From Piromyces finnis finn (lineage: Eukaryota > Fungi > Neocallimastigomycota), in the NCBI GenBank assembly GCA_002104945.1, contig MCFH01000017.1, positions 558,001-622,000 of the forward strand: a stretch of 64,000 bases of DNA, given 5' to 3'. Made by a program: the position numbers and the translations under genes. A model generated the notes under the pieces. That model saw nothing but the letters and a program-made list of their open reading frames with translations, did no database searches and was not told where the DNA came from. Positions 18,704 to 58,614 of this stretch are shown here, piece by piece. Position 1 is the stretch's first letter; each line of letters begins with the position of its first letter.

Positions 18704-19139
18704 TGTAAAAAAGCGATTTTTTATTAAAGAAAAGTGTGATAAGCACACTAGTTATTAATTAGCTAGTATAATACGCTTTCCTATTAAAGGCGTAAAGTTA
18801 ATAATATTTATATAAAGAAAAATAATTAATATTAGTATATATTAAGTTATTAAAAATATTAAAATTTTTAAAGTTTTAGGTTTTATAGGAGTTTATAACT
18901 TTTATTAACTTTAAGTTAAAAAATTACTAACGCTAAAGCTTCGTAATTTTGTCAATTTTTGTTCTTTTTATACTTGAACAATTTTAATTTTTACAGTTTT
19001 AATTAATTAATTATTGTTTAATTATAAAATATTTAATTTTTATAAATTAATAATTAATATAATTATTGTAAATGGTTAATAAATTTAAAATTTTTAATAA
19101 TGTGAAATAAATTTAATTAATAAATAATTTTATTAATAA
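18704..19139 (-). repeat. Older, truncated LTR1-family copy (e)
   Basis: Reverse complement of the 3' two-thirds of 42857-43475, diverged; interrupted by the Copia C1 LTR. Confidence 0.85.
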
Positions 19140-20178
19140 GGTTAACAAAGAGAAAAAGTTACATTGTAAATATTACAGTTATATAATGAGATGTAAGGTC
19201 ATGTGACCATATAAAATAAAATAAAATAAATAAAAAATAACTATCTCTACAACACGTAGACATTACGTTTACAACACTTTTAATACATGTTTATGTTTTT
19301 ATACATTAGTCACGTGTGTTTAATATATGATATAGATAAATAAAATTATGAGCCATAAATGTTCACACTCCCCCTCAAATTAGATTATCTTTAAGAATAT
19401 CTTATTTGTATATTCAAACATTCTTGGACCATGTAGATCTTTAGTTAAAGGGTCAGCTAACATTTCTTTAGTGTTTATATATTCAATTTTTATATTGTTC
19501 TTTTCTATGTTGTCAATAATGAAATAGTAGTGTATATTTATGTGTTTTAACTTAGTGTTTATTTCACCGTTTTCTATTATTTTCTTGCTTGCCTTGTTGT
19601 CGGTGAATAAAGTTATATTTTTGTAATTTAAAATTTCATCTACCATATTTTTGATCCATAGGATTTTCTTCGTATTCATTGACGTACTAATGTACTCAGC
19701 CTCAGCGGTAGACGTAGCCACACATGTTTGTTTCTTCGACAACCAGCATATTGGGCTGTTTTCCATTAAGATTATCCCTCCAGAGGTAGATTTAAAGTCT
19801 TCTGTGCCTCCGTAGTCCGAATCAGTGTATCCTTGGATTTTTCCTTCACCACTTTATTCGATTTTGTAATGCTTTGTAGTGGATAAGTATCTGAAAATAT
19901 TTACAATTGTATTCCAGTCAGATACTGTTGGGTTTTCGGTTATTCTTTAACACTAAAAAATAAAAACAAATATAATAAAAAAAATAATAATGCTAAATAA
20001 AAAATATTGAAATTAATCATTTGTCTATATTTTTTATTAATTTTATAATTTTTAATTATTATGTTTATAATAATTTTTTTCCTTATTTGTTTACATTATA
20101 TATAAATTTTATTTTATTTTATCTTGTTTTAGTATTTTAATTTTTTTTTCTGTTTTATTTTTTTATCCGGTAAAGAGT

Positions 20179-20659
20179 CTAAAAACAGTCAGAATAACAT
20201 TTAAGAGCACTTGGACCAATTCCAATAATACATGCGATAGCTTCTGGTCCAGTAAATGGACCAAAACCATAAAGAGCTAGGTAAATGGTTATTCCGGCGG
20301 TGTAGGCAGCACAAACAAAAAGCTTTTTCCAGTCGCAATCATCACCTCTAGCAACAAGAGATTTTGTTCCAGTATACCCCAAGTCGGCTTCGTATAATTT
20401 TTCTTCAAATTCTTCGACCACGGCTTGTCTAATGTTGTAAACTTCGTCACTGGTAGTGGCATTATTGCTAATAGATACAGAATTGATAATATATTCGAAG
20501 CCGCTACTTACCATTTCTTTTAATTGATTATCCGTAATATCAGTGTTGTGGATATCACAAATTTCTTCATAATTAATCATTTTGTTCATTAATTCTTTAA
20601 CTGAACTACTTAATACAAGCATAGTATTAAGTAAAAGGTACTAAAAATAAAAATTTCAT
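20179..20659 (-). CDS. Putative secreted Cys-rich pro-peptide (signal peptide, acidic pro-region, LVAR site, 55-aa hydrophobic mature peptide); 1-nt frameshift in the signal peptide
   Basis: ORF 20179-20622. An upstream ATG at 20659 gives MKFLFLV(L/P)LLNTMLVLSS if one base near 20635 is removed. Sits in a 790-bp non-TE cassette (19948-20737). Confidence 0.75.
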
Positions 20660-21073
20660 TTTAGTTATTTTTTATGTTATAATTATTTGTTATTACCTTT
20701 TTTTTTACTTGTTTTTATATAATTCATAAAAATAATATTGCAGCTTTATTAACAGCGAAAGCAATATCCGGTCTAGTACATTTTGATAAGTATATTAATG
20801 CACCTATTGCACTTTTATATTTAGTCCTATCAAAAGTATTATTATTTGAGGTGCTCTTATCAATTGTTGTACATGGAGTATTTCTATTACATACATTCTC
20901 CATGTAAAATCTTTGTAATACATTATTAATGTAATTTTCTTGAGAAATAATGTATTTGGAACCTTTCTTCTCAATCTTTATTCCTAGAATATAATTAATG
21001 GGATCACTATTTGATATTTTAAATTTACTTTTAATTTTGCTTATTACTCTCTATTGTATTTGTTTTTCCAACT

Positions 21074-21502
21074 TGTAAAGAAATGTGTCTTTAACAATAA
21101 AAACAAATTATAATATTTACTAAATAACTTAGTAATATTACCACTTTAAAATATTCTGTAAATTATTAATTTATAAAAATATCATTAAAAACACATAGAA
21201 TTTAACTTAATAAGTTAGTGTTTAATAATATAATTATTTATTAATAAAATCTCGATTCTTTAAAATATTTGGGAAAATTCACTCGTATTTATACTAAAAT
21301 TTTTTTAAATTAATTTATAAAATTTTTTCAACTTAAAATTCTTAGCCAATCAATAATCTTCATATAAAATAAAATTTAAAAATAAAATAAAATTATAATT
21401 TTTTAAAATAGTATCTATGAAGTCTCAAACTAGATTCATTCAGACTCAAAGTCTTAGCTACTAACCACTAAGACAATTTAGTTATTTCTAGTATTTGTTA
21501 CA
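21074..21502 (-). repeat. A-family solo LTR (429 bp) in C1 RT
   Basis: TG...CA; TSD CAACT on both sides. Confidence 0.9.
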
Positions 21503-23045: not shown

Positions 23046-23648
23046 TGTAAAGTCGACACTAAAAGAATAGATTAGGATATCTATTCTATTACAATAACAC
23101 CAAAATTAAAAATAAAATTGTTTTTTAAAAATATCTTTTATAGTAGAAATTTTATTAATAACAATTACATTAATAAAATGATGAAAAATATCTTCTATTT
23201 ATATTTTTCCTAAATACATTTATATTATATTATAACTTTATTTAAAATATATTATTATTTAAAACCTACACTAAAATCTTAATTATTAATAAAATATTTA
23301 AACTATAACTATTTTAGTAAAATTATATAGGCAATTCAAATCAAGTACTATTTAATTTGAATATGTGCCCATGTATTATTTATATATTAATCATTTATTA
23401 TTTATATACTATTCATCTTTTTCTATCAAAAACAATACTAAAACTAAGAAATTAAATTGAGAAATTTAATTTATTTGTAAAACATTAAAAATAAATTAAT
23501 AATTTATTTTGTTTCAAACTTTAATTATTATTAAATAAATTATGTCTCATTTTCTTTTTCTGTAATATAAATTGTGTAACTTAAGCAATAATACTTGTAG
23601 TTTAAGTTACATTAAAGATATCAAGCTGAGGCGTTTGATATCTTTACA
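23046..23648 (-). repeat. R-family solo LTR (603 bp) in C1
   Basis: TG...CA; TSD TCTTC on both sides. Confidence 0.93.
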
Positions 23649-54336: not shown

Positions 54337-57300
54337 ATGGCTACCGAATATATTCTTTCTAACCACGGACGTCCACTTAACGGTGACAATTTTAGTGCTT
54401 GGAAATTAAGAATTACCAGCATCCTCACCGCTTTAAATCTCAAGAATTATTTAGACCAAAATATTACTACTGATGGAATTCAAGATCCAGGTGAAATCCT
54501 AAGAATACAAAAGGAAAATGCAGCTGCTGTATCTATTATACTTAACAATATTGAAGATAAAATCTACCCGCTGATAACCGATACTGATACTGCCCACGAA
54601 CTTATGGAAAACTTAAAAATCCTCTTTGAGCAAGACGAAGATGTAACTTTACAAGAATGGATGAACAAATTAAGAGATATGAAGGTCAAAAATCACAAAG
54701 AAATACTTAGCGTAACTAGTAAAATGATGTCCATATTTAAACAAATGGAGAAGAAAAAGTTACCAATTACTGAACAAGAAAAAATAGATTATCTCTTAGG
54801 ATGTATGCCAAAGGAACTAAAAATCATTTTCATTTCTGGAACCACAACTACTGCAAATGACCTTTATGAAGATATTAAAAATAAATACAAATTACTCTAC
54901 CATATAGGAAAAAATAAAGAAATTAGAAATACAAGAAGCTATGATGAAGATATGATGGACATTGACTTAGTTAACAATATAATGAAATTTAACAAGGGCA
55001 ACAACAATAACTCTAGAATAAGCAAATACTGTCATATATGCAATATGAAAAATCATAATACTAGTGAATGCGGTTATAACACAAAAAACAAGAATAGATA
55101 CAACAAATACAACAATAACAGCAACAACAACAGAAGGAAACTATATCAAAATAACAAAAGAAATTATAATAGAAACAACATCAATTATTTAAACAAGAAA
55201 GAAATGGATGAAATTTTATCAAATGATGGACTTGCCTATATTAATAACATCAATAATAAAGAAAATAATGAGAAATCTTCGAACTCTACTACCTGGATAT
55301 ATGACACAGGTGCTTCTGAACACATAACTAATGATAAAAGTATTTTAAGAAATTTTGTTGAACAAAAATTAAAAATGAAGTGTGCCAACAATACTACTTG
55401 TGAATTTCAGGGATTCGGTACATACGAAGGAAAACTAAATAATCATAACATAACATTAAAAAGGGTTTTATACTCCAAGGATATAGCACAAAATCTAATA
55501 AGTGGAATAAAATTAGCACAATCACACATAAATTGTGAAATAATTAATAAAAATTTCAAACCACAGTTAATAATCAAATACAATAATAAAAATATATTTA
55601 GAACACATGTCAATAAAAGGAATAATTTCAAAATTAAAACACAAAATAATAATTTCAATGATAAAAAGATATATTGTATCAATGAAAATTTATCAAATAA
55701 TATATGGCACAATAGATTAGGACATTACTATAACAAAAATCTAGAAAATTTTTTAAAGTCACACAAAATTGAAAATAATGAATGCCTACATTGTAAAATA
55801 TCAAAATTAAATAGAAAACCACACAATGGAATCCCACCCAAAGCGACTAGAAGAAACGAAGTTATTCATTCCGATGTTATGGGACCTTTACCACCATCAA
55901 TAAATCAATATAAATATATTCTAACTTTTATTGACGAAGCTACTAGAAAAGGTTGGGTATTTAATCTAAAAAACAAATCAGATGTTACTAGTACGACTAT
56001 CAATTTTATTAAATTAATCAACAATAACTACCAAAATGAAAAAATTAAAATTTTTAAGTCTGATAATGGAAAAGAATACAATAATAAAAAATTATTAAAT
56101 TTTTGTAAACGAAATGGTATTAAGAAAGAATTTTCCCCACCTTACAATCCTCAAAACAATGGGATAGCTGAACGTTTCAACAGAACTATTACATCGTGCG
56201 TTAAAACAATTCTGTTTTGGGCAAAACTTAGTTTAAACTTTTGGGAATATGCAGTAAAACATGCTGTATATATTTATAATATGATACCACACAGTTGTAT
56301 TTCCAATAAAATTCCTAATGAAATATACTTCAATAAAAAGATAAATCTAAACTATTTAAAAACTTTTGGTTGCATTGCATACTATAAGAATTTCAACCAA
56401 AACAAAAGAAAATTTGATATAAACTCCAGAAAAGGAATTTACTTAGGATTTAATAATAATACTCACTGTTTTATAATTATGGATTTCTACGATCATAATA
56501 TACATTTAGTAAGAGAAGCAATTTTCATAGAAGAAAAACCAGGCAATCTCAAAATTGTATCCGGCAACAATCCTGGTTACTCTAATATTTCAAAAACAAA
56601 AATTTCTAATGGTACAATGGTATATAAACATGATCAGGAATCTAACTATGAGGAGATCGATACCAACCACTATCCTACCATAATTAAAATCAAGAATAAT
56701 TTTGACAATAATTATAATAATATCAGTGAGGATAGTTACACAGAAGAAATTTTTCAACAAAATAATAATCATGAAAATAGTGATGATGGTTACACAGAAG
56801 AAATTTTTCAAGATGAAAATAATCTTAACATTTATGAAAATGATGTAATTATTCAAAATAAAAAATTAGTTACCGAGAATTCCAACAAAGATAATAATGA
56901 AAATATCAGCAATAACAATAATAAAAGACCACTTTCACCTACTGAAGATACACATATTAGCAAATATAGAATTACAAATACAACTGAAGAAGAAAATACT
57001 TCTGAAAATATTGTAAACAACACTATTTATAATATTGACAATAATGATAAAAATTCTGATTGTAACACATTATTTTCTATTAATACTGAGGTTCCACTTA
57101 CTTTCAATGATATATTTAAAAGAGAAGATTGGAAAGAATGGAGACGCGCTATTAGAAATGAACTTTTTAATCTATACAATAATAAAGTTATGATATTTAC
57201 CAAAAATATTCCAGAAAATACAAATGTTATCTCTACAAAATGGGTTTTTAACATAAAACGTGATTCGAACAATAAAATTTCAACATATAAAGCTAGACTT

Positions 57301-58614
57301 GTTGCTAGAGGATACAAACAAAAATACGGAATTGATTATGACAATATCTACTCACCTACATTAGACATTGTTTGCATTAGACTCATTCTATCTTTAGCTG
57401 CAAAATTTAAATGGAACACCTACCAGCTAGATATTAAGGCCGCGTATTTAAATGCTCCATTAGACAAAAATGTTTATGTTTCTATTCCCCAAGGTGATAA
57501 AAACTACAATAAAGGTTTCTGGCTTCTTAAGAAATCGTTATATGGATTAAAACAATCAGGCCGTAATTGGAATATCACTATCTCTGAATTTCTCTCAAAA
57601 ATTGGATTTACTCAATGCAAATCGGAATCTTGTTTATTTTATAAAACTTTTGATAATTCTTTAACTTGTTTAATAGGTCTATACGTAGATGACATGATTA
57701 TTTCTGGCACTAATCAGGAACTTATTAGCACTATATTAAAAATTAAAAATAAATTTTCTATTTCAAAATGTGAAACTATTAATTTCATTTTAGGCATTCA
57801 GGTTGTACAGAAAAACTTCAGTTACACTATTTCCCAAAAATCATATATTGAAAACATTTTATCAAAATATAATTTTAACAATATTAAAAAATCTAAAACC
57901 CCTTGTACTGGTGAAAATTATGTTTCTAAGAACAATTCTTTATTCGATAAAACTATCTACAAATCGGCTATTGGTTCTTTAATTCACTTAGCTAAATGCA
58001 CTCGCCCTGACATTGCTTATGCTGTTAATAATGCCGCCAGATATTGTGAAAATCCTACTGTTAGTGACTGGCATAAAATCATTAATATATTTAAATATCT
58101 CAATTTTTCTATGGAATACTCTATCACTTATGATGGATCTGGTGAATTTATTGCTTATTCTGATGCTGATTTTGGGGGAGACAAAAATGATAGAAAATCT
58201 ACATCAGGCAATCTAATTTGTATGGGAAATAAACCAATCTTTTGGTCATCAAAGAAACAAAAAGTAGTTGCTCTTTCAACAGCTGAAGCGGAACTTATAA
58301 GTACTTCAGAACTAACAAGAAAAATCTTATGGCTAAGAAACATTTTTAAAGAAATTTTGAACAAAAATATAACAATAAAAATATATACAGATAATTTATC
58401 CAGCAAAAAGACAATTGAAAATGGACAATTCAACAACAATATGAAACACATAGACTTAAGAGAACACTTTATCTTTGACGCTTTTAAAAATAATAAAATA
58501 ATTTTAGAATATATAAAATCTGAAAATATGCTTGCTGATACATTAACCAAAAATACTAATGGGCCAAAAATGACTAAATTCACAAACTTAATTTTTAATA
58601 AACAAAATAAATAA
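54337..58614 (+). CDS. C2 gag-pol polyprotein (1425 aa)
   Basis: CHICNMKNHNTSEC, WIYDTGAS, WHNRLGH, HSDVMGP/KSDNGKEY, YVDDM, YSDADF; Copia domain order. Confidence 0.96.
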   Translation: MATEYILSNHGRPLNGDNFSAWKLRITSILTALNLKNYLDQNITTDGIQDPGEILRIQKENAAAVSIILNNIEDKIYPLITDTDTAHELMENLKILFEQDEDVTLQEWMNKLRDMKVKNHKEILSVTSKMMSIFKQMEKKKLPITEQEKIDYLLGCMPKELKIIFISGTTTTANDLYEDIKNKYKLLYHIGKNKEIRNTRSYDEDMMDIDLVNNIMKFNKGNNNNSRISKYCHICNMKNHNTSECGYNTKNKNRYNKYNNNSNNNRRKLYQNNKRNYNRNNINYLNKKEMDEILSNDGLAYINNINNKENNEKSSNSTTWIYDTGASEHITNDKSILRNFVEQKLKMKCANNTTCEFQGFGTYEGKLNNHNITLKRVLYSKDIAQNLISGIKLAQSHINCEIINKNFKPQLIIKYNNKNIFRTHVNKRNNFKIKTQNNNFNDKKIYCINENLSNNIWHNRLGHYYNKNLENFLKSHKIENNECLHCKISKLNRKPHNGIPPKATRRNEVIHSDVMGPLPPSINQYKYILTFIDEATRKGWVFNLKNKSDVTSTTINFIKLINNNYQNEKIKIFKSDNGKEYNNKKLLNFCKRNGIKKEFSPPYNPQNNGIAERFNRTITSCVKTILFWAKLSLNFWEYAVKHAVYIYNMIPHSCISNKIPNEIYFNKKINLNYLKTFGCIAYYKNFNQNKRKFDINSRKGIYLGFNNNTHCFIIMDFYDHNIHLVREAIFIEEKPGNLKIVSGNNPGYSNISKTKISNGTMVYKHDQESNYEEIDTNHYPTIIKIKNNFDNNYNNISEDSYTEEIFQQNNNHENSDDGYTEEIFQDENNLNIYENDVIIQNKKLVTENSNKDNNENISNNNNKRPLSPTEDTHISKYRITNTTEEENTSENIVNNTIYNIDNNDKNSDCNTLFSINTEVPLTFNDIFKREDWKEWRRAIRNELFNLYNNKVMIFTKNIPENTNVISTKWVFNIKRDSNNKISTYKARLVARGYKQKYGIDYDNIYSPTLDIVCIRLILSLAAKFKWNTYQLDIKAAYLNAPLDKNVYVSIPQGDKNYNKGFWLLKKSLYGLKQSGRNWNITISEFLSKIGFTQCKSESCLFYKTFDNSLTCLIGLYVDDMIISGTNQELISTILKIKNKFSISKCETINFILGIQVVQKNFSYTISQKSYIENILSKYNFNNIKKSKTPCTGENYVSKNNSLFDKTIYKSAIGSLIHLAKCTRPDIAYAVNNAARYCENPTVSDWHKIINIFKYLNFSMEYSITYDGSGEFIAYSDADFGGDKNDRKSTSGNLICMGNKPIFWSSKKQKVVALSTAEAELISTSELTRKILWLRNIFKEILNKNITIKIYTDNLSSKKTIENGQFNNNMKHIDLREHFIFDAFKNNKIILEYIKSENMLADTLTKNTNGPKMTKFTNLIFNKQNK

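Follow-up and report, generated by a model that had tools for sequence, protein, structure and literature searches.

Anaerobic gut fungi form a small minority in the rumen and yet hold their ground against bacteria by means that are poorly known. As candidates for ribosomal antimicrobials, only a handful of lactococcin-972-like genes from two other genera have been reported to date (PMC8106346). A short open reading frame (ORF) on contig MCFH01000017.1 of Piromyces finnis, lying amid the remains of retrotransposons, looks like the gene of a secreted, Cys-rich peptide with an N-terminal pro-region. The locus raises the question of whether this ORF is a true gene, whether it still works and how it came to lie inside a Ty1/copia element. 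According to our analysis, the ORF is a relocated gene copy that has probably died recently, and it belongs to a new pre-pro-peptide family of Neocallimastigomycota. The term window is used below for the whole stretch of 64,000 nt that was analysed, and positions refer to it.

The peptide gene in the window

All ORFs of at least 180 aa in the window encode Ty3/gypsy or Ty1/copia proteins. An apparently intact copia Gag-Pol of 1425 aa with gag, rve and RVT_2 domains was found at 54337-58614. The peptide gene is located on the minus strand (Table 1). Reading from the ATG at 20659 gives MKFLFLVPFT, directly followed by a stop codon at 20627-20629 in this upstream frame. The main frame is open from 20640, has its first ATG at 20622 and encodes 147 aa up to the stop codon at 20179-20181. 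G+C content is 0.33-0.38 across the ORF versus about 0.17 in the flanks.

The coordinates and the architecture that an initial annotation of the window had given for the ORF, namely a signal-peptide start, an acidic pro-region, an LVAR site and a short C-terminal part with five Cys, agreed with our reading. The same holds for its description of the ORF as a non-TE gene in a retrotransposon graveyard, since all ORFs of at least 180 aa are retroelement-derived.

Table 1. Features of the peptide gene, the surrounding cassette and the adjoining copia sequence.
Feature	Position	Strand	Remarks
Cassette of 790 bp in single copy, comprising 78 nt 5' flank, peptide gene and 231 nt 3' flank	19948..20737	-	In copia pol
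Copia pol directly upstream of cassette (…RPDIAFAVNKAA)	20738..21073	-	94% identity with other copies
Copia pol directly downstream of cassette, RNase H end	19077..19947	-	95% identity with other copies
Start codon and first six signal-peptide codons (MKFLFL)	20642..20659	-	Upstream frame; matches MKFLLL of P0039/P0013
Frame break	20626..20642	-	5 nt shorter than closest DNA relative L030; signal-peptide start out of frame
Remaining signal peptide (LLLNTMLVLS)	20608..20637	-	Main frame
Acidic helical pro-domain, 87 aa, net charge -9	20347..20607	-	Motif I-x-Y-x-x-I-C-x-x-H
Conserved N-x-T sequon (NAT) in pro-domain	20455-20463	-	Family alignment
LVAR processing site (putative), residues 89-92	20347-20358	-	Family alignment
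Mature peptide region, 55 aa, hydrophobic, 5 Cys, predicted two-helix hairpin	20182..20346	-	
Tyr codon in column of near-invariant third Cys	20281..20283	-	Alignment of 18 members
Stop codon	20179..20181	-	

A gene family of anaerobic gut fungi

A search of the P. finnis genome (56,455,805 bases in 232 contigs) revealed three copies of the family: the window copy, an intact copy on contig C112 and a broken copy on contig C177. The intact gene encodes 179 aa, has an apparent signal peptide by sequence pattern and corresponds to BCR36DRAFT_365881 in NCBI. In the C177 copy (L003:1510-1916; G000:C177:192487-192893) the pro-domain and the hairpin lie in different frames separated by a stop codon, and a signal peptide could not be recognised. 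A check for tandem arrays of family genes within 10 kb found none.

A family profile was built from the three P. finnis copies and scored against 1.84 billion representative proteins. The search returned 28 relatives at E≤1e-3, 13 of them at E≤1e-10, and the best non-self match had an E value of 8.9e-29. The ORF is therefore not a product of chance, and there is hardly any doubt that it belongs to a real gene family. All relatives that carry an organism name are from Neocallimastigomycota (Piromyces sp. E2, Neocallimastix lanati and P. finnis), and the remaining ones come from one NCBI assembly and from JGI/ENA metagenomes. A word-index protein search, which is far less sensitive than the HMM scan, returned only the query itself for member P0001 and four proteins for the alignment.

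Pfam and NCBIfam scans of 18 aligned members, both as whole proteins and as mature parts, gave sub-threshold noise only. A sequence profile search of the PDB with the family profile gave no match, and a literature search found no paper on the family. The family is undescribed and, as far as the named members show, confined to anaerobic gut fungi. Feature searches of the ESM Atlas had best scores of 0.84-0.86, which is below the level of evidence. P0001 and a second member, P0029, shared the same nearest Atlas cluster, which comprises 198-aa proteins of Ascomycota, has the automatic name 'Multiprotein-bridging factor 1' and carries no Pfam domain. With scores below the level of evidence, this cluster is a possible distant lead.

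Anatomy of the family

In intact members the signal-peptide region, judged by eye, consists of M-K-x and a run of about 15 hydrophobic residues ending in VLS. It is followed by an acidic, helical pro-domain of about 87 aa, for which the family alignments show the motif I-D-Y-x-x-I-C-x-L-H-Y-N-x-D-x-T-D-x-Q-I. Most of the 18 members also share an aligned N-x-S/T sequon. No feature is better conserved in the family than the L-x-x-R site, which the initial annotation had pointed out: N-x-L-x-x-R or a dibasic variant stands directly before the first Cys in 17 of the 18 aligned members.

The mature parts are 46-64 aa long, hydrophobic and typically contain six Cys in the pattern C-x7-C-x9-C…C-x10-C-x3-C. 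Except in two divergent members, GRAVY values range from 0.6 to 1.3 with a low hydrophobic moment, and in most mature parts the best 19-aa Kyte-Doolittle window scores 1.5-2.2. Net charge is between -3 and 0 in all but one member; this neutral to anionic character sets the mature peptides apart from most antimicrobial peptides. The two divergent members have polar mature parts (GRAVY 0.16-0.19, one of them with a charge of +4), which indicates that the fold needs no membrane. The window copy and P0029, its closest intact relative, share 71% identity over the mature part, compared with 39% over the pro-domain.

Predicted structure

AlphaFold2, run with the family alignment, predicted the window ORF as all-helical (pLDDT 75.7, pTM 0.70), with four helices in the pro-domain (block pLDDT 80-89). 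The mature part of P0029 was predicted as a two-helix hairpin with helices at residues 6-28 and 33-54 (pLDDT 84.8), in line with the helical hairpin proposed in the initial annotation. In this model, the facing Cys pairs 22/39, 12/50 and 4/54, which were assigned from sequence positions in the register of the hairpin, suggest three disulfide rungs. Five fold searches with both models (Foldseek PDB, VIA-align wide, Atlas) retrieved generic helical bundles and hairpins only, at Z≤8. Membrane hairpins, for example those of an Mrp subunit, OST and cytochrome bo3 subunits, rank among the closest structural neighbours of the hairpin.

A complex test of the pro-domain against the hairpin gave weak support for their association. 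The score was 0.37 (best of three controls, 0.01). For comparison, 51 of 78 solved complexes attained the mark, as did 2 of 108 mismatched pairs, and at 0.60 or under only 5 of those 78, together with all 4 mismatches that passed, did so. The runs agreed in at least 72% of contacts, and partner pLDDT was at least 65.

Putative processing of the precursor

In fungal effectors, Kex2 is documented to act on L-x-x-R where the pro-domain ends (10.1101/2020.05.27.120113). P. finnis possesses a gene for a kexin-type convertase with Peptidase_S8 and P_proprotein domains (G000:C90, L042:700-2466). Two further P-domain loci were noted on contig C156. Judging from the sequence features of the intact members, it is fairly probable that they are secreted and cleaved by kexin.

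The same features could also belong to small membrane proteins that have a cleaved signal peptide, a helical domain in the lumen or outside the cell, and the C-terminal hairpin as a permanent two-span anchor. On this view, the role of L-x-x-R would be structural, with no cleavage there. Most mature parts have hydrophobicity at the transmembrane level together with a low hydrophobic moment, which fits an anchor as well as a released peptide. Both helices of the hairpin are 22-23 residues long, and the membrane hairpins among its best structural neighbours point the same way. However, a span of the bilayer would put the turn of the hairpin on the reducing side, whereas the facing Cys pairs (of typically six Cys) suit a disulfide-stapled fold in the lumen or the extracellular space. 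The two members with polar, even cationic, mature parts cannot be anchored in this manner. The position of the basic site directly before the first Cys, the most conserved feature of all, argues against an anchor, as do the compact model of the whole protein (pTM 0.70) and, weakly, the result of the pro-domain/hairpin test (0.37 versus 0.01). We consider a permanent anchor unlikely and prefer a released hairpin.

The frame break and the fate of the window copy

The frame break lies where the initial annotation had placed it (Table 1). The signal peptides of the closest relatives (MKFLLLTIFTLLNTMLVLS) extend over both frames of the window copy, which shows that the break is real. A manual check of the window found no GT..AG pair that would join the two frames as an intron and restore the reading frame. 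Assembled read data agreed with the assembly at the break, which the initial annotation had singled out for inspection: a 606-nt short-read DNA contig from run X1, which possibly derives from the same sample as the assembly, spans 20167-20724 with 0 differences and 0 gaps. The break is therefore located in the DNA and is not an assembly error. Of the two causes that had been suggested, pseudogenisation suits the appearance of the copy, and a sequencing error is unlikely in view of the identical X1 contig.

The window copy also differs from its relatives within the coding region. The third Cys, conserved in 17 of the 18 aligned members, is replaced by Tyr in the window copy alone, and the family alignment shows that this copy also lacks one of the codons for the conserved H-Y-N motif. 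Loss of a Cys does not by itself prove decay, since odd Cys counts also occur in the apparently intact members P0001, P0016 and P0011. Contigs from three runs of two studies (X2-X4), whose status as RNA is a guess of the tool, fall on 20167-20566 without differences at a depth of 3-5, and none of them reaches the break. In the putative RNA runs, a contig matching exactly the copia copy around the peptide gene was found at 19683-19799. The window copy may be transcribed at a low level.

An open frame of 147 codons with coding-like G+C implies either that decay was recent or that the product of the ATG at 20622 is still in use. A working copy, with the break being an error or a variant of the strain or with the ATG at 20622 yielding a useful non-secreted protein, would explain this open frame and composition as well as the possible RNA contigs over the ORF in three runs and two studies. 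It would also agree with a dN/dS of about 0.28 against L030, although dS is near saturation in that comparison. But the X1 contig is identical to the assembly across the break, and a disulfide-dependent peptide lacking a signal peptide cannot fold in the cytosol. In addition, the near-invariant Cys and one H-Y-N codon are gone, several other family copies are likewise broken, and the copia element around it is dead and carries two solo LTRs as well. That the copy still works seems to us quite improbable.

The window copy is very likely non-functional, and the locus is probably a pseudogene. After its insertion, the copy would have lost both the near-invariant Cys and the frame link to its signal peptide, so that no secreted product could be made even if low-level transcription persists. 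The working copy of P. finnis would be the 179-aa paralogue on contig C112 (BCR36DRAFT_365881).

Selection and turnover in the family

A comparison of two intact metagenome members gave dS 0.305 and dN 0.061 (dN/dS 0.20), and intact members are under purifying selection. Between the window copy and L030, dN/dS was about 0.28 with dS near saturation, which indicates that most of their divergence accumulated under constraint. The initial annotation had named the absence of homologues, of expression and of purifying selection among paralogues, or the finding of a fragment of a longer known protein, as grounds against the gene. This is not the situation: homologues exist, the intact members are constrained, and the ORF is no fragment of a longer known protein.

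Turnover was tallied for those loci whose DNA was readable. P0033 (on four contigs), P0025 and the C112 gene are intact, and the window copy, the C177 copy, the P0036/P0039 group and the P0005 group are broken. The P0036/P0039 group has an in-frame TAG, a TGA at a conserved Trp and a lost fourth Cys; the P0005 group has a TGA and no ATG. The contig of P0004 (L041), on which the signal-peptide start is doubtful, was counted neither as intact nor as broken. About half of the examined copies are broken. We also observed that metagenome gene callers translate TGA as Trp on the AT-rich fungal contigs in question (L030:791-793 and 872-874; L044:10037-10039). As a result, W stands in the database proteins P0039 and P0005 at positions that are stop codons in the DNA, which gives broken genes an intact look in protein collections.

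A cassette inserted into a copia element

The flanks of the cassette are homologous to copia Gag-Pol and repeated in the genome, and the host is accordingly a Ty1/copia element. Compared with the intact 1425-aa Gag-Pol of the window, the adjoining pol sequences match residues 1182-1234 on the upstream side and residues 1296-1422 on the downstream side, and the peptide gene and pol are on the same strand. At the junctions, two bases (AA) can be assigned to either side. The uninterrupted insertion site (GCTGCAAGAAAATCCG) was found by genome search in at least 20 other copies of the host copia family, and the empty form is also present in read data as a contig that joins 19945 to 20738.

Some further retroelement sequences were observed in this part of the window. 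A solo LTR of 417 bp (21074-21490), derived from another retroelement family, is nested in the host copia copy; its family has at least 40 copies with 95-98% identity, often paired about 6 kb apart. A second nested LTR-like insert, also a solo LTR, lies at 23046-23648. The Gag-Pol at 54337-58614 shares 56-60% protein identity with the copia family that hosts the cassette.

No second DNA copy of the cassette was found in the P. finnis genome. A search of the cassette for terminal inverted or direct repeats gave nothing beyond AT-rich low complexity, and comparison of its flanks with the two paralogue loci gave nothing beyond AT-rich noise. The 3' flank has matches of 70-75% across the genome, which we regard as low complexity because both strands of the same loci were matched. 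The metagenome relative L030 aligns over 20733..20026 at 66% identity. This alignment starts 4 nt inside the 5' end of the cassette and covers the gene and 150 nt beyond it, and a TATA-like box lies in L030 about 60 nt upstream from the position that corresponds to the cassette start. The cassette therefore appears to be about one transcript long and to lack a promoter. When L030 was examined for synteny with P. finnis, the sole match was a repeat.

The window copy would have arrived as a transcript-sized piece of DNA of 790 bp that entered a break in copia pol, with no loss of host sequence and no transposon ends. Most likely, a fragment of cDNA or DNA was captured by end joining, and this view of the mechanism is based on one event. 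The cassette could instead be cargo that copia picked up through template switching during reverse transcription, in which case the gene would be able to spread with the element. Its transcript size, its start about 60 nt downstream of the position of the L030 TATA-like box, the common strand of gene and pol and the contig in the possible RNA runs that matches the host copia copy exactly are all in keeping with such an origin. Against dozens of copies of the host copia family in the genome, however, there is one copy of the cassette, and an element with its pol interrupted would be unable to supply RT or RNase H of its own. Exit and return of RT at the same nucleotide without loss of pol is not what template switching would be expected to produce. 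Copia cargo is thus very improbable, and end-joining capture fits better because no sequence was lost and the overlap is 2 bp. With none of the hallmarks of a transposon, the cassette offers a clean case of the capture of a host gene copy in a retrotransposon.

A proposed route from precursor to hairpin

Taking the evidence together, we lean towards the explanation that the family releases a stapled hairpin from a precursor and that the window copy has decayed after being relocated. In intact members, the signal peptide would bring the precursor into the ER. There the acidic four-helix pro-domain, of about 87 aa and with a conserved N-glycosylation sequon, may keep the hydrophobic C-terminal hairpin soluble while the cysteines, typically six, form disulfide rungs between its two helices. 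A kexin-type convertase would then cut after the conserved L-x-x-R and release a stapled hairpin of 46-64 aa, neutral to anionic and uniformly hydrophobic, which most likely inserts into the membranes of target cells.

That the hairpin acts as a membrane-active antimicrobial is a tentative proposal that we consider less likely than not. It is equally speculative to see in the family a new class of eukaryotic bacteriocin-like weapons, made as kexin-released, disulfide-stapled hydrophobic hairpins. If this were true, the secreted peptides would serve to attack rumen bacteria, methanogens, protozoa or rival fungi at their membranes, and an arms race would lie behind the fast birth-and-death turnover, in which about half of the examined copies are broken. 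The probable pseudogene status of the window locus lowers its own value. The family is nevertheless of interest although the window copy is probably dead: these lineage-specific, apparently processed and stapled hydrophobic peptides under purifying selection are concrete natural sequences to test.

Comparison with known systems

The candidates described earlier from anaerobic fungi are lactococcin-972-like, have been found in no species other than N. californiae and C. churrovis, and represent a different family, unrelated to the present one (PMC8106346). The initial annotation had mentioned Cys-rich bacteriocin-like peptides as possible kin. Like hydrophobic class II bacteriocins, the family consists of small ribosomal Gly/Ala-rich peptides with small-xxx-small helix-packing motifs that are made as precursors in the setting of gut competition. 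Unlike them, it has no double-glycine leader; where a short leader would be expected, there is a pro-domain of 87 aa. Kinship gained no support, as neither whole proteins nor mature parts of any member matched a Pfam or NCBIfam model.

A saposin-like fold as in Histoplasma CBP had also been suggested. Saposins and CBP are likewise helical, with six Cys and lipid association, but saposins are bundles of four to five helices and about 80 aa with a different Cys pattern, whereas the model of the family is a two-helix hairpin. This kinship was not supported: Pfam, NCBIfam and PDB searches gave no match, fold matches were of a generic helical kind, and no saposin or CBP entry appeared in the sequence or fold searches.

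Helical hairpins stabilised by cysteines are known from plant alpha-hairpinins, from scorpion kappa-toxins (CS-alpha/alpha) and from the twin-CX9C CHCH proteins. All of them show polar surfaces and two disulfides, with defined pairs of the CX3C or CX9C type; CHCH proteins are found in mitochondria and lack a signal peptide. The present family shares with them a helix-turn-helix with predicted disulfide rungs between facing cysteines, and its spacings C-x9-C and C-x10-C resemble the twin CX9C pattern. It differs in that it would form three disulfides and have a uniformly hydrophobic surface. Although a hairpin is predicted, there is only one C-x3-C, as against the two CX3C motifs of alpha-hairpinins and CS-alpha/alpha toxins, and fold searches of the hairpin gave no matches to alpha-hairpinins, kappa-toxins or CHCH proteins.

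In the order of its parts, the family resembles the Kex2-processed pro-domain (K2PP) secreted proteins of fungi, which include SnTox3, ToxA and the SIX effectors (10.1101/2020.05.27.120113). Both have a signal peptide, which is putative in the present family, a pro-domain, L-x-x-R (or KR/RR) and a Cys-containing mature part, and the kexin gene is present in P. finnis. The processing motif LxxR, KR or RR is found between pro-domain and mature domain, as LVAR in the window copy and as N-x-L-x-x-R or a dibasic variant in 17 of 18 aligned members. There is no relation in sequence or fold. K2PP pro-domains are short and predicted to be disordered, whereas that of the family is an 87-aa conserved helical bundle, predicted as four helices. 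The mature part is a hydrophobic hairpin of 46-64 aa in the family and a beta-rich effector in K2PP proteins, and the organisms are a gut commensal and plant pathogens, respectively. By tests of individual features the family is a member of neither group, but it is like Kex2-processed proteins in layout and like Cys-stapled hairpins in the predicted shape of its mature part. It would add a new type of mature domain to the Kex2-processed precursor proteins of fungi.
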